In this document: piece after piece, positions 27,558 to 48,550 of the stretch | Layout: each line of letters starts with the position of its first letter | Position numbering within the stretch: the stretch's first letter is position 1 | NCBI GenBank assembly: GCA_001179505.1 | Contig: CDMY01000485.1 | Location: 1 to 64,000, forward strand | DNA length: 64,000 nt | Source: Vitrella brassicaformis CCMP3155 | Taxonomy: Eukaryota > Protista > Chromerida | Direction: 5' to 3' | Translations under genes and position numbers: made by a program | Notes under the pieces: generated by a model | Told to the model about the DNA's origin: nothing | The model's input: only the letters and a program-made list of their open reading frames with translations | Database searches by the model: none

Positions 27558-28391
27558 GATGGGGTCTGCCCTCCTTTGGCATCACGTGCACGAGCTCCGA
27601 GAGGGTGCTCTGTAGGTGATTGACAGGGCGGAGGTGCGTTGTGGATGTATGTATGTGTGTGGAGTGAGGGAGATTTACTGTGTTTTGCTGTCTCTCAGTG
27701 GCTCATCCGATCGACGAAGGGCAAAGGAGTGCTCTTGCTGCATGCAGAAGCCAGCACATAGATGCCTGGCTGGCGTGGAGGATTGTCTGCCTGTCTGACT
27801 GTACGACGCGGTTTTTGTAGATGGAAGGGCAGTCATTTGGAGTCAGTTTGGATGTGTGAGGGCTCTGCCGCTTGCTTGAGAGTGTGTGTGGCGACACTTT
27901 CTGATTCCGTCGACACACTTGTCTGCCGTAAACAATCCTTCCGACCAGCAGCAGGTTTATGACTATGAATATGAATGGCGCCGAAAAGGTGCTCTGTGAT
28001 TGACTAGGTCGTGTGTGAAGGCGGCAAGGGATGTGGTGTGTTAGGGTGTGAAGTTGACTCCGAACAGTCAATGTACATCGTATGTGTTTGCATCTGTCTT
28101 GCTCTCTGGGTCTGATGCGGTGGGGCTGACGCTCTCAGTCAAGTGTCCATCCATCAATGGTTTCTCCCACCACACACCATTGGATAAAAGGCATCTGCAC
28201 CGGTCATCGTGCGCTTGCAATAAAACAGGTCTCATCACTTGCTCGCCACACATCTCAGGCACACAGAGAAATGCCCTTCACGCCAAAGGTACCCAACACA
28301 CATCACTAAGCAGTCCGTCAGCATGCAAAAACGTACGAAGGGACACACCGCCACACGCACACGGCACTGACCGCCCGTCCCCGACGAACAC

Positions 28392-30038
28392 TCACAGGAT
28401 GGCTAAGAGCCTGTACTCGATGTACAGGTCCTTTCCAGTGGAGCTGAGTCTGCCCGGCTTGATGACCCGCCGCACCTCACCCACACGCATGTCAGTGACG
28501 ACCTCCTGCCACCACTCAGCAAACCCAGACACACATAAGACCCGCCCACGGTCCTCGCCTATCTTGTCTTGTCCGTCGAAGTCGTCACGCCACTGGATGA
28601 AGTCATACTTGACGCGCTGGCCACGGGTCGGTTTTGGTCCACTGCCATGCTGCACGACTTGATGGAAGACACCCGACGGCAACCGAACAAACATCCGCTG
28701 CGTGAGGCCATCGCCACTGCAATGGTAAACAGGACGACAGATGGCGACACCAGCCCGGCCTGTTGCTGCCCTCGAACTGCACACCTGGTGTCTGAGATGA
28801 CTATGTCTGTCTCGACGCCGTACATGGCCGCGTTGATGTTGAAGGCTACCTGCTCAGTCTCACTGGCCATTGTCAGCACCACAGCCATGTCGGCCGCCGA
28901 CGCGCCGAGCCGTTTGCGGCGGTAGTGGTCGACCATACGGCCGATGTGGTCGGGCTGCACCACCTCGACGGGCCGAGGCCACCTACACACAAAGGCACAC
29001 ACACGCACACACAGGCAGCCATCGGTGGGTATCTCTGTCATTGTCAGGCTGTTCATGTGTGGCTGACATATCGAAGCGGTTATTGAGCTTGTCGTTCATT
29101 TCGTCGACGGTGGACTGTGTGGTGGCGATGGCGTGGCCGCAGACCCTCACTGACCGAATGGGATCCTCGCCACTCAGAGGCGCCAGGAATGGCGTGACGG
29201 CCTGGTCGCACACAGACACACAAACAGGGCGCAACAGATGAACAGCTCCCCTCTCTCCCCCCATCCTGTGTGTCACCTTGATCTCGTTGTCGAGGTTTGT
29301 GTATCGTCGCTTGGCGGCCTCCAGCTGCCCCTCCAGCCGGGCCGTCTCTGTGTTGGCTGCCCTCACGATGGCCTCCACGGCGCTGACCAGGGACCCACTG
29401 TGGGCGGGAAGGCTCTCGGCCGATATGTTGGGCTCGCCATCGGCAGTCGGAGGGGCGTCTGAGGCCGCTTTGTCGAGCGGCGACAGCAGCAGCTTGACCC
29501 AGAAGTCATGCAAACCTGCACCACACAGCCCAATAGAAGCGTAGCTGACCTCGCGGCGCCTCTGCTCACCTCTGTAGTCCCGCTTGGTGGCCTCATGCAG
29601 CAGGTGGCCGACCGACGCCGCCCTGCCTGCGCTGCGAAGCGTCACGGCGTCGAGGATTGCCTTGTGGATGGCCTTAAAGGCCTCTGGGCAAACGTCCACG
29701 AAGATCCTCTGCTTGTCGTCCTTCCTCAGCCGGCCGTCCCAGCAGCCCGAGAACAGCGCCGCCAGCAGAGTGCCCTCCACGCTGTCGCCCTCCGTCATGT
29801 GCTTGCGGCTCACATGACACTCGACGCCGCCCACACTCAGTGTCAGCTCGTCATCGGGCGATGCGCTTGACGGGTCGGAGGCGCCGTGTTTCTGCCTCTC
29901 TCGATGGGCGGCATCGTCGGCTTGGCGGATCTGGGCATGCAGCTGGCCGATGGCGTCGCCGATGGCGGTGACAGGCACGTGCAGCCTATCGAGAATCGCA
30001 ATGGCGCTGAACTTGCGAGCGGCCAAGTCGGCGTCCAT
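28392..30038 (-). CDS. BTB + degenerate BTB + FKBP-like protein, copy D (apparently intact)
   Basis: ATG at 30038 (MDADLAARKFS..). BTB: LSVGGVECHVSRKHMT..LLAALFSGCWD..RIFVDVCPEAF. FKBP exon: LPSGVFHQVVQHGSGPKPT..EYRLLAIL*. Confidence 0.82.
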
Positions 30039-30401
30039 CGTCGCTGCTCAACAGATCTCTCAGACCTCTCTGTGGTGAGCACCTGAATGTCACACAGACA
30101 AACGGGATGAATAGATCTTGTTCTTGTTGACTGCTGTGTCACACCCTTGCCTCACCTGATGACATCAGGGCGTCAGATGATGCCAAGATCTCCTCCGTGC
30201 CTCCCTTCTTCAAAAGTCTGAGCTTGCAGGACGCGTGGGAAGGGACGGACGTGGATGTTCACAGCGGGGCCCGCGGCAGAGGTGTCGTTGCAGGACGACA
30301 CAGCTTGGGTTCAGGAGCGCGGGATGGATGTATGGATGACTGAATTGATGCCCTTTCCGCCGTATGACGTCGGCATGGCATCGGATGCGATGTACTTATG
30401 G

Positions 30402-46000: not shown

Positions 46001-47291
46001 CGTCCATCATACTCGTACGTCGGCACCACTCAGGCAGTCAGCACCACACAAGGACTCCCTTTGTCTGTCTCTCTTTGTGTCTGTCGGCATCCATCGATAG
46101 CTGGACCTGCTCATCGCCATCATGGTGAGACAGACACGAGATACAAGCCTTAGGGACATCGACAGGGCGACGGACAAGGCGTGTGTGTGTCACCATTAGG
46201 CGTCGACGTATGCGGCCATCGAGGAGACACAGGCTGCACAATATCAGTATCAGAGACAAGGGAGACAGACAGACAGACAGCGGCGCATAATGGTCCTCTC
46301 TCCGCTCATCTACTCAGGCTGCTGCGGATTCGCGTGTTGAATGAGTACCTCACAATGCCTCGCCACGAGAGGCTGCCGCCGCCATTCAACCTCATCGGTC
46401 GGTGCGACACGAGACATGACATGTGGGCATGATCTGTGTCTGTGCAGCTGTGTTCGTGTCGGAGCCCCTGCGATATCTCGCCTCCCTCATAAGCGAACAA
46501 CGGCGGGAGCAGTCGGCACTCTGCCGCATTGCCTTCTGGTCGATGAAAGTCGTCTACGTCACCGTCGACGGACTCCTGCTTATCGTCGCCTTCACACCCG
46601 TGGCCACCTACAAAATGCTGGAGGATATTCTCCGAGCGATAGGGAAGGGGGACTATGTGGTGGTACTGTGTCACGTACTCTGCTTACCCCTTCTCATCCT
46701 CCTGACGCCCGCTAATCTTCTGTGCCACTACGCCCAATGGGTGAGGGTCAGAAGACACGCGAGATCAGACAAAAGCAGAGGCACTGTCTCGTTTCTCTGG
46801 AATGTTCGCTTGGCAGGGGCTGCTGTTTTCTTTTGACGCCACCAAAACCGACAGCGCGGAGACGGCTGATGAGAGACGCAAAGCACGGGAATCATACAAG
46901 GACCGCATCGACAAGTGGATTGAGGCGGCAGACCATCACGACTCGGGCGTACCTGACGTCATGGGAGGTGAGACAGGACAGACAGGCGTCTCACGAGGAA
47001 GGCGACAAGGCTGTGTCTGTCTATGTGCTGCAGCCCTCAGGCAGTTCAAAGCCGAAATCCAACCAGGTGCCAAAGTGAAGAATCTTGTATATTCGCCTTA
47101 ATCCATCTCGACTTCTCTCTCCCTGTCTGACTGTCCCAGTTGTGCAACAGATGGACAAGCGACAGACGGAGATGGACAAGCGACAGACGGAGCGACAAGA
47201 CGCCCGGCACAGGCAGATGGAGAAACGGCTGACCGAGATGGAGGTAGGGATGGAGGCGCTCATCAGGGAGATCAAGGCGAAGATCAAATGA
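43047..47291 (+). CDS. Ankyrin-repeat TRP-family cation channel, copy 1 (more than 20 exons)
   Basis: Ankyrin repeats GSAIHYAA, GQTPLHRAV, GWTPLHTAA, GKTPFDLA. TM region YWADSWNVIDM (S2-S3), LRLLQ..VGSLILSIVRMFSDISIFL (S4-S5), pore FGSFPKATLTLFFAGQGDF, S6 IILLDLLIAIMASTY, TRP-box-like RVLNEYL..LPPPFNLI, C-terminal coiled coil ..EIKAKIK*. Confidence 0.85.
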
Positions 47292-48344
47292 CAATAGACA
47301 AGTGCATGGCTCCTGCATGAACACCATAACCGATCGTGATGGATGGCCCATGCAGATCTCAATCCGTCTGACGCCCATTCAGCTTTCTGCCCGGATGGCT
47401 GAAAGTCGACACAAATGAATATGGCTGCCCCCTCGTGGCGCCGCCAGTTAACCAGGGAGACAGAGAGAGATACACTTAAAGGTTTGACTTGAGGGATGTG
47501 TGTGGTCCAACGGTGCATGGTCCAAATCCACAACGCACGGACAGAGACACACACAGACATGCCGTCATGCACATCACACACGGATGCATCACACAGACAG
47601 ACAGGCAGTGTGTTCGCATGGAGCAAGTCACTTCGGCCTCTGAGCAGGCAAGCCAAGTCAAAAGGGGTCGATGATGAGGCGGGCGGCAACCCCCTCCTCT
47701 CCTTCTGCCGCCATCACGCCCGTGTGTGACCCGACTCGACGTGCCGCGATGCCCACACACACAATGAGTGTGCAACGGCGGCGACACGGTAGGCCGGCCC
47801 CTCTTATGTGGTGGTAGCCTCTCTGTCTTTCTGGCTAGACCGACCCTCACGGTGGCATGGCACTTGCCGCTGGCTGGGTGGTATGGTCATTCTTCACATG
47901 AGGCAGTGGGCACAATATGGGTTTTTGACAAATGTAGCCGCCCGACGCAGACAGGCAGGCAGGCAGGCAGTGAGAGAGCGACGGGTGGACGCATTGCAGG
48001 CATGCAGTACATAAGCTAAGTGCAGCACCAGCTGGCTGATCGACCCTGGCTGGCTGGCTGGTTTCGTGGGCTCATCTCTTCTTCCCTTCTCATCGCCTCT
48101 GCCCCTCACTCCCGCCGATCCCCACTGTCCATCTCTGTCTGTCGTGTCATCTGTTCTGTCGAGTGCGTGTGTGTGGGGGCGACGATCCAAAATAGAGTGA
48201 GGGCATCAGCAAGGCACCGTGTGCAATTCACCGCAGTGGCAGCCAGGTCAAAGGGTAGCCAGCCAGGCAGCTGAGCGGCAGAGAAGGATAGGCAACCGAG
48301 TAAGTGCATGTGTGTGTGTGGATCGGCAGAAACCAGTTAGTCCG

Positions 48345-48550
48345 TGGTGGAGATGGAGGCTGACGGAGATGGAGGCAAGGATGGAGGGGCACATCAAAGA
48401 GATCAAGGCGAAGATCAAATAGGCGGCGTGAGACACCAACTGACTGCACGGCCTCTTGGTGAACAAGATACACCAAACGTGATGGATGGTCCGTGCAGAC
48501 GTCAAGCAGACATGCATGTGACTCAATCTGTCTGACGCCCATTCAGCTTC
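48345..48550 (+). repeat. Solo duplicate of the TRP channel C-terminal end and 3' flank
   Basis: RLTEMEARMEGHIKEIKAKIK* ends at 48422, followed by a 3' flank matching the reverse complement of about 59330-59440. Confidence 0.75.

Follow-up and report, generated by a model that had tools for sequence, protein, structure and literature searches.

Three intermingled families of variable BTB-FKBP-like, F-box-LRR-like and ankyrin-TRP genes form a probable birth-and-death cluster in Vitrella brassicaformis

Introduction

The chromerid Vitrella brassicaformis CCMP3155 carries, within the first 64,000 bp of contig CDMY01000485.1 (C485, 67,973 bp; this stretch is further called the window), a BTB-FKBP gene standing head-to-head with an F-box-like gene and followed by an ankyrin-TRP channel gene, with the same order repeated directly downstream (units A and B). 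The question raised by this locus is whether the three genes make up an amplified sensor/effector cassette of ubiquitin-ligase adaptors and a channel, inherited and regulated together, as was proposed from inspection of the letters alone (the sequence-only reading), or whether they belong to families that expanded independently. The analysis favored the latter: the region is probably a shuffled birth-and-death cluster of three intermingled, independently expanding families of variable recognition proteins, while the A/B repeat represents one recent duplication which caught one member of each family. Hardly anything is known of how the free-living relatives of malaria parasites defend themselves or recognize partners, and a true TRP family varying at its ankyrin binding positions and mixed with variable putative cullin adaptors offers concrete recognition candidates. 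No description of these Vitrella families was found in the searchable literature.

Tandem duplication in the window

Self-BLAST of the window revealed a direct repeat of positions 28189–33352 and 36845–41934 with 86.5% nucleotide identity, extending at 79–83% to 36219 versus 45019, and the junction between the two units was covered, with zero differences, by 388-bp contigs from three sequencing runs. The start codons of the BTB (-) and F-box-like (+) genes were 364 bp (30038/30402) and 345 bp (38644/38989) apart in units A and B, respectively, and all four gene models (BTB_A, BTB_B, FBL_A and FBL_B) were open with canonical splice sites. The spliced models were joined from coordinates and used for frame checks and substitution counts, and the searches were run with single exons or public protein identifiers. 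Hence, the tandem repeat of the same gene order, with units beginning at 28,189 and 36,845, and the short distance between start codons (about 345–365 bp) were read correctly from the sequence alone.

In contrast, the claim that the three-gene unit is present twice held for the order but not for the content: only unit B possesses three working genes because TRP_A is frameshifted and lacks the channel part. Exon 4 of this copy lacks one base, which results in a stop at codon 189, and approximately 3.2 kb are missing from the first transmembrane (TM) helix to the 3′ flank, with the sequence jumping after position 36219. The frameshift region was recovered with zero differences in contigs of two DNA runs (one of which may be the source of the assembly) and in one spliced contig of an RNA-like run, while the deletion junction (36219/36220) was bridged by none of the records listed. 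A longer exon 5 was considered as a rescue of the frame and rejected: it adds 12 nucleotides and does not restore the frame.

The two partial copies suspected at the ends of the window were also different from what had been expected. At 1–5.5 kb, a divergent BTB/F-box-like pair is indeed present, but 2.37 kb separate its members, an FKBP-only gene lies in between, and its spacer is not homologous to the A/B spacer. At 57.9–64 kb, an intact TRP gene (841 aa) was found, but it stands alone: the match lists place no BTB or F-box-like gene within 12 kb of it.

Genome-wide distribution and histories of the partners

In the whole assembly (72.7 Mb in 1,064 contigs, the scope of all counts given here), the BTB exon was matched at 63 places, the F-box-like gene at 116 or more, TRP at about 39 and the FKBP exon at 147, all family counts being lower bounds. 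The compact three-gene order occurred in the A/B duplication only. An F-box-like gene was faced within 6.5 kb by 6 of 50 BTB genes (with a gap above 5 kb in two of these) and was located within 3 kb of 3 of 39 TRP copies, and at 30 of the 39 TRP places neither partner was present within 12 kb. TRP faces BTB on contig C544 and F-box-like on C209, and all three head-to-head combinations occur; contig C842 holds a cyclic variant, TRP(+), BTB(-), FKBP fragment, F-box-like(+), and further orientations were found on C209, C544, C748 and C543.

A looser co-clustering of the three families was, on the other hand, evident outside the duplication, so that the linkage is confined to the A/B repeat in its compact form only. 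All three subfamilies were present on five contigs, and TRP was found on 9 of the 18 BTB contigs against 0.65 expected under independent placement (contig-level Poisson), a figure which is inflated and was not taken at face value, since the contigs are not independent (at least three of them probably adjoin) and some contig sizes were estimated. The left end of C485 (1–40) meets the start of C544 (L051:1-60) in register inside FBL_0 with a 4-nucleotide overlap, and a 130-bp match (96%) links the end of C544 to the start of C842; part of the co-location thus probably reflects one continuous region and not independent evidence. Even with this reduction, co-location of the three families beyond random placement, which the sequence-only reading implied, is supported.

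The partners did not share a common history. Pairs A and 0 had 67% nucleotide identity in the BTB gene and 88% in the F-box-like gene. The four paired F-box-like genes formed one clade, while their BTB partners split into two supported clades (A/B and 0/C842), both of which also included unpaired members (the position of the type II BTB genes was set aside in this tree). These discordant identities and trees indicate that partners were exchanged between the pairs; the spacers were not homologous between pair types. Together with the duplication, deletion, inversion and broken copies (TRP_A and BTB_C) present in the region, this fits the birth-and-death behavior that had been claimed. The amplified, fixed and co-inherited cassette claimed with it was not upheld: the order is not conserved, most members have no partners, and the histories are discordant.

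A different possibility is that the head-to-head BTB/F-box-like pair alone is the selected unit, with a bidirectional promoter and interchangeable partners, the TRP gene being a bystander. The same layout is repeated in a distant type II lineage, where three of the four BTB genes (one on C516 and two on C246; 31–36% identity to type I) face a type II F-box-like gene (35–41% identity), with about 225 bp between the start codons in C516; the chance of one independent juxtaposition was roughly estimated as 0.02–0.1. However, two type II pairs compared with each other were 81% alike at the nucleotide level and count as one event because they are copies of each other, and this second lineage is only suggestive of a selected pairing. 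The RNA-like contigs, which cannot rank the genes by depth, included spliced BTB_B-like and FBL_B-like sequences in one and the same run and spliced TRP mainly in another, and the F-box-like segment was identical between A and B. Against this, the majority of the BTB and F-box-like members are unpaired and the spacers of the pair types lack homology. Moreover, close genes in Vitrella stand head-to-head more often than by chance, with mostly modest co-expression of such pairs (Woo et al., 2015; PMC4501334). A selected pair is, consequently, rather unlikely in our estimate, and the paired-receptor-like unit suggested by the sequence-only reading likewise did not pass the tests of order and shared history. 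A further possibility is an immune-like gene complex kept together by selection and working as one guard system, composed of ankyrin-gated TRP channels with diversified binding faces and of variable ubiquitin-ligase receptors of two kinds, with a co-regulated BTB/F-box-like pair; this appears unlikely.

Domain composition of the three families

Pfam searches with unspliced open reading frames (ORFs) gave nothing for the BTB-FKBP, F-box-like or TRP genes, and the families were assigned from exons, public proteins and fold models. In the BTB proteins, identical 454 and 444 aa versions of which are present in the public annotation, the first BTB is assigned to the T1/KCTD type: its profile matched the solved structures of K13, SHKBP1 and KCTD10 at 9e-7 to 2e-4, and also KCTD9, while the Pfam BTB_2 matches were weak (E 0.053 for BTB_A and 3e-4 for BTB_D). 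The fold model was too poor in the BTB parts (low confidence), and this assignment is based on the profiles. The KCTD interaction patch (NVGG/DRD/LF) is only partly kept, with VGG retained and DRD replaced by D-V-C in A/B; Cul3 binding is not common to all KCTD proteins.

The C-terminal tail is predicted to have an FKBP fold. Foldseek matched it to Mip/FKBP domains with E values of 8e-9 to 1e-6 and a root-mean-square deviation of about 2–3 Å over 112 residues, the Mip-type domains being the closest, and Pfam FKBP_C was recognized with E 0.018. In the pocket, the F-D pair is kept and a variable sequence takes the place of the V-I-P-G-W stretch (the alignment ends before the distal loop), and the FKBP-like head is probably inactive as a peptidyl-prolyl isomerase. 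FKBP-like exons also occur at 18050–19000 and 2580–3450, fused to non-BTB N-terminal parts, and some of the genomic FKBP-exon matches are arranged in tandem arrays (C748, C364). The type II BTB-coiled coil-BTB genes (L069:1000-2823, L070) gave no FKBP match and end in a short unidentified domain in its place.

The TRP family combines, by sequence, ankyrin repeats with a six-TM Ion_trans core and a TRP-box-like motif, and its members are predicted cation channels. Pfam recognized Ank in TRP exon 4 and both Ank and Ion_trans (1e-7 to 1e-22) in full-length paralogs, and the best solved relatives of one paralog were TRPM5, TRPM2, TRPC6 and TRPM8; TRP_B itself was assigned by exon identity and hydropathy. 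A profile search with the S5 exon gave 22 proteins, and all seven that were looked up fell into Vitrella clusters, although a query of 48 residues cannot prove absence elsewhere. Two extra hydrophobic segments follow the TRP-box-like motif at 46448–46740, and their exon matches 33 places in the genome.

The F-box-like protein was predicted (mean predicted local distance difference test score, pLDDT, 72) to start with a coiled coil, followed by short helices at 161–193 and directly thereafter by a solenoid of repeating strand-helix LRR units. The nearest folds in Foldseek were COI1, TIR1 and D3, and the Atlas neighbors were F-box and LRR clusters; these matches are distant (8–12% identity, TM-scores of about 0.2 in Foldseek to 0.4 in Atlas). 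A wide structure search was swamped by matches of the N-terminal coiled coil and uninformative. The F-box motif had no Pfam F-box match in 19 members and its profile had no match in the PDB, so that the gene is described here as having a predicted F-box-LRR-like fold, with an F-box motif unsupported by any profile. Thus, the BTB, FKBP and ankyrin-TRP identities proposed previously were confirmed, while of the F-box-like identity the fold was retained and the motif was not. In one paralog (C700), long ORFs just upstream of the F-box-like gene (L068:579-2077) resemble a retroelement remnant and had no Pfam match.

Three cullins were recognized in the genome: one Cul3-like, one Cul1-like and one that, by eye, looks Cul4-like. 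The exon on contig C603 matched Cullin-3 best (2e-12 versus 4e-8 for Cullin-4, in a single exon), and the Cul1-like gene is located on C69. As Cul3-like and Cul1-like genes are present, a function of the BTB-FKBP and F-box-like proteins as ubiquitin-ligase adaptors is possible.

Distribution of the variation

The variation was concentrated in the parts expected to contact other molecules. Among the TRP copies, the ratio of nonsynonymous to synonymous substitution rates (dN/dS) was 0.19 in the S5-S6-TRP segment and 0.80 in the ankyrin exons. Repeat positions 3, 5, 10, 13 and 14, which form the binding face of ankyrin repeats, were set before counting (ten positions in six copies) and contained on average 4.2 different residues compared to 1.5 in the scaffold, with 0 of 20,000 shuffles as high. 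The proportion of nonsynonymous differences (pN) was 0.59 on the face, while the scaffold had a pN of 0.11 and a proportion of synonymous differences (pS) of 0.20; pS at the ten face codons was likewise raised, to 0.44. This hypervariability may reflect positive selection on the ankyrin face. Between the A and B F-box-like genes, the middle of the LRR was only 63% identical, with the variable residues mostly located just after the strands (by eye). In the A and B copies of the FKBP exon and the mid-LRR, both dN and dS were raised (dS 0.43 versus 0.07–0.19 elsewhere), and the raised dS indicates segment exchange between paralogs. Judged from sequence comparison and fold models, each family combines a conserved scaffold with a variable putative binding module (BTB-coiled coil-BTB with the FKBP-like head, F-box-like with LRR, and channel with ankyrin), in agreement with the variable receptors postulated from the sequence alone.

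The same pattern could arise by neutral accumulation in a rearrangement-prone region, with the variability coming from relaxed constraint and gene conversion. The pseudogenes and mosaics, the joint rise of dN and dS in the blocks of FKBP and LRR sequence and the dN/dS below 1 over whole domains are all compatible with drift, but the pore and the ankyrin scaffold are strongly conserved, the changes fall on the binding face and most of the modelled copies are intact and spliced, which makes drift quite improbable.

Proposed function and comparison with known systems

The comparisons show that members of the three families were locally duplicated, deleted, inverted and exchanged in segments, and in the favored explanation these events reshuffle a cluster of three independently expanding families. 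The BTB-FKBP and F-box-LRR-like proteins may serve as substrate receptors for Cul3 and Skp1-Cul1 ligases, respectively, marking foreign or changing targets for degradation, and the TRP protein may be a cation channel opened or closed by a ligand of its ankyrin face, as in ACD6 with small proteins. The three families would probably work side by side as a repertoire for recognition, in biotic defence or partner recognition, and not as a fixed one-to-one complex. With less certainty, the selective pressure might be biotic, and the families might cluster because the region duplicates readily.

Several observations weigh against this explanation. Both adaptor motifs, the KCTD patch and the F-box, are degenerate, and cullin or Skp1 binding is only putative; a defence or immune-like role is something that we infer; the ankyrin test consisted of simple counting in six copies; and selection for linkage could lie behind the co-location of three unrelated families and the second lineage of head-to-head BTB/F-box-like genes. 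The weakest alternative is the original one, in which ligase adaptors guard or control the channel as a co-regulated three-gene unit resembling paired plant NLRs: the cyclic order in C842, the frequent presence of TRP on BTB contigs, the variable binding surfaces in all three families and the fact that FKBPs bind channels speak for it, but it is very improbable given the inconstant order, a broken TRP_A next to intact adaptors, discordant partner trees, an inflated co-location statistic, a degenerate FKBP pocket and a conjectural interaction of the products. Its failure makes the locus less surprising.

Clustered, expanded birth-and-death families of F-box and MATH-BTB adaptors in nematodes and plants were reportedly described by Thomas in 2006 and proposed to target foreign proteins. 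The Vitrella families are similar in having a conserved cullin-side domain, a variable substrate-side domain and a clustered arrangement, but their BTB is of the KCTD type and present twice, a degenerate FKBP forms the variable head, and they are mixed with TRP genes. Plant sensor/helper NLR pairs are head-to-head genes as well, and share with the pairs described here the divergent orientation and short spacer; in Vitrella, however, there is no NB-ARC or TIR domain, the partners are not co-inherited and the layout is a genome-wide habit.

For the channel with variable ankyrin repeats, plant ACD6 and Lr14a represent a working analogue: in immunity, a calcium-permeable channel is controlled by their ankyrin repeats, to which small ligands bind (10.1101/2021.01.25.428077; 10.1101/2024.12.10.627212). 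ACD6 has five TM helices and is unlike TRP; the Vitrella protein, built on a TRP-type core of six TM helices and carrying a TRP-box-like motif, falls outside the ACD6 family. It shares ankyrin repeats and Ion_trans with group 1 TRP channels (TRPM/TRPC/TRPA-like), but differs from them in its lineage-specific expansion (about 30–39 copies), the hypervariability of its ankyrin faces and the additional pair of hydrophobic segments, and fits no one subfamily. The BTB proteins resemble KCTD proteins and the BTB of Plasmodium K13 (PMC6650413) by their best solved matches, but have a partly kept DRD-LF patch, a second BTB-like domain and the FKBP-like tail. Finally, the predicted model of the F-box-like protein is most similar to the F-box-LRR receptors TIR1, COI1 and D3/MAX2, to which it adds an N-terminal coiled coil, and it differs from them by having no F-box profile match.

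Features of the window and neighboring genes

The coordinates of the family members, tandem units and spacers are collected in Table 1.

Table 1. Family members and duplicated segments located in the window.
Feature	Position	Strand	Description
Tandem unit A	28189–36844	none	8,656 bp; made shorter by the TRP_A deletion; self-BLAST
Tandem unit B	36845–48348	none	the sole unit with three intact genes
BTB_A	28392–30038	-	intact gene of 5 exons encoding 454 aa; a helix, the KCTD-type BTB, a coiled coil, another BTB-like domain and the degenerate FKBP
BTB_B	37040–38644	-	444 aa, intact; spliced contigs in RNA-like run
BTB_0	3725–5500	+	473 aa, intact; BTB clade other than A/B
BTB_C	21795–23394	+	sister of A/B, unpaired; frameshift in FKBP exon
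BTB_D	19872–21501	-	444 aa, intact, unpaired
FKBP-like exon	2659–2970	-	separate gene between FBL_0 and BTB_0
FKBP-like exon	18698–19000	+	gene without BTB
FBL_A	30402–33015	+	N-terminal coiled coil, F-box-like helices (about aa 155–195), LRR solenoid; 6 exons, 731 aa, intact
FBL_B	38989–41605	+	737 aa, intact; spliced contigs across the 5′ part
FBL_0, 5′ part	1–1354	-	runs on in register at the start of contig C544
TRP_A	34453–36219	+	disrupted ankyrin-TRP copy, transcribed; exon 4 frameshifted near 35080 and channel exons missing beyond 36219
TRP_B	43318–47291	+	intact gene of 22 exons encoding 837 aa; about four ankyrin repeats, the S1-S6 helices, a TRP-box-like motif, two additional hydrophobic segments and a coiled coil at the C-terminus
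TRP_C	59440–63366	-	intact inverted paralog, 841 aa, no adaptor neighbor
Head-to-head spacer A	30039–30401	none	363 bp; about 84% like spacer B across the BTB-side half; unlike the spacer at 1355–3724
Head-to-head spacer B	38645–38988	none	344 bp

Housekeeping genes are interspersed in the cluster region: a gene of a PP5-type Ser/Thr phosphatase (Metallophos and PPP5 matches) is located between the family clusters at 6200–9100, and an intron-poor ORF of a glutathione S-transferase (Pfam GST_N and GST_C) adjoins unit A at 26445–27557. A large proline/serine-rich multi-exon gene without a Pfam match occupies 50592–56500 and includes an assembly gap (N at 55705–56004).

Two further stretches associated with the duplication deserve mention. 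Between the F-box-like and TRP genes (33300–34055 and 41930–42850), a transcribed stretch is 83% conserved between the units; 156 nucleotides of a 754-nucleotide contig of an RNA-like run were placed at 33900–34055 with zero differences, and no convincing ORF was seen. The 3′ flank of the TRP copies (36220–36761, 47292–48348 and 57884–59404) was 87–94% conserved, compared to 77–80% for the TRP genes themselves, and matched a deep 686-nucleotide contig of an RNA-like run; its conservation may be due to recent exchange or to an unrecognized small gene or RNA.

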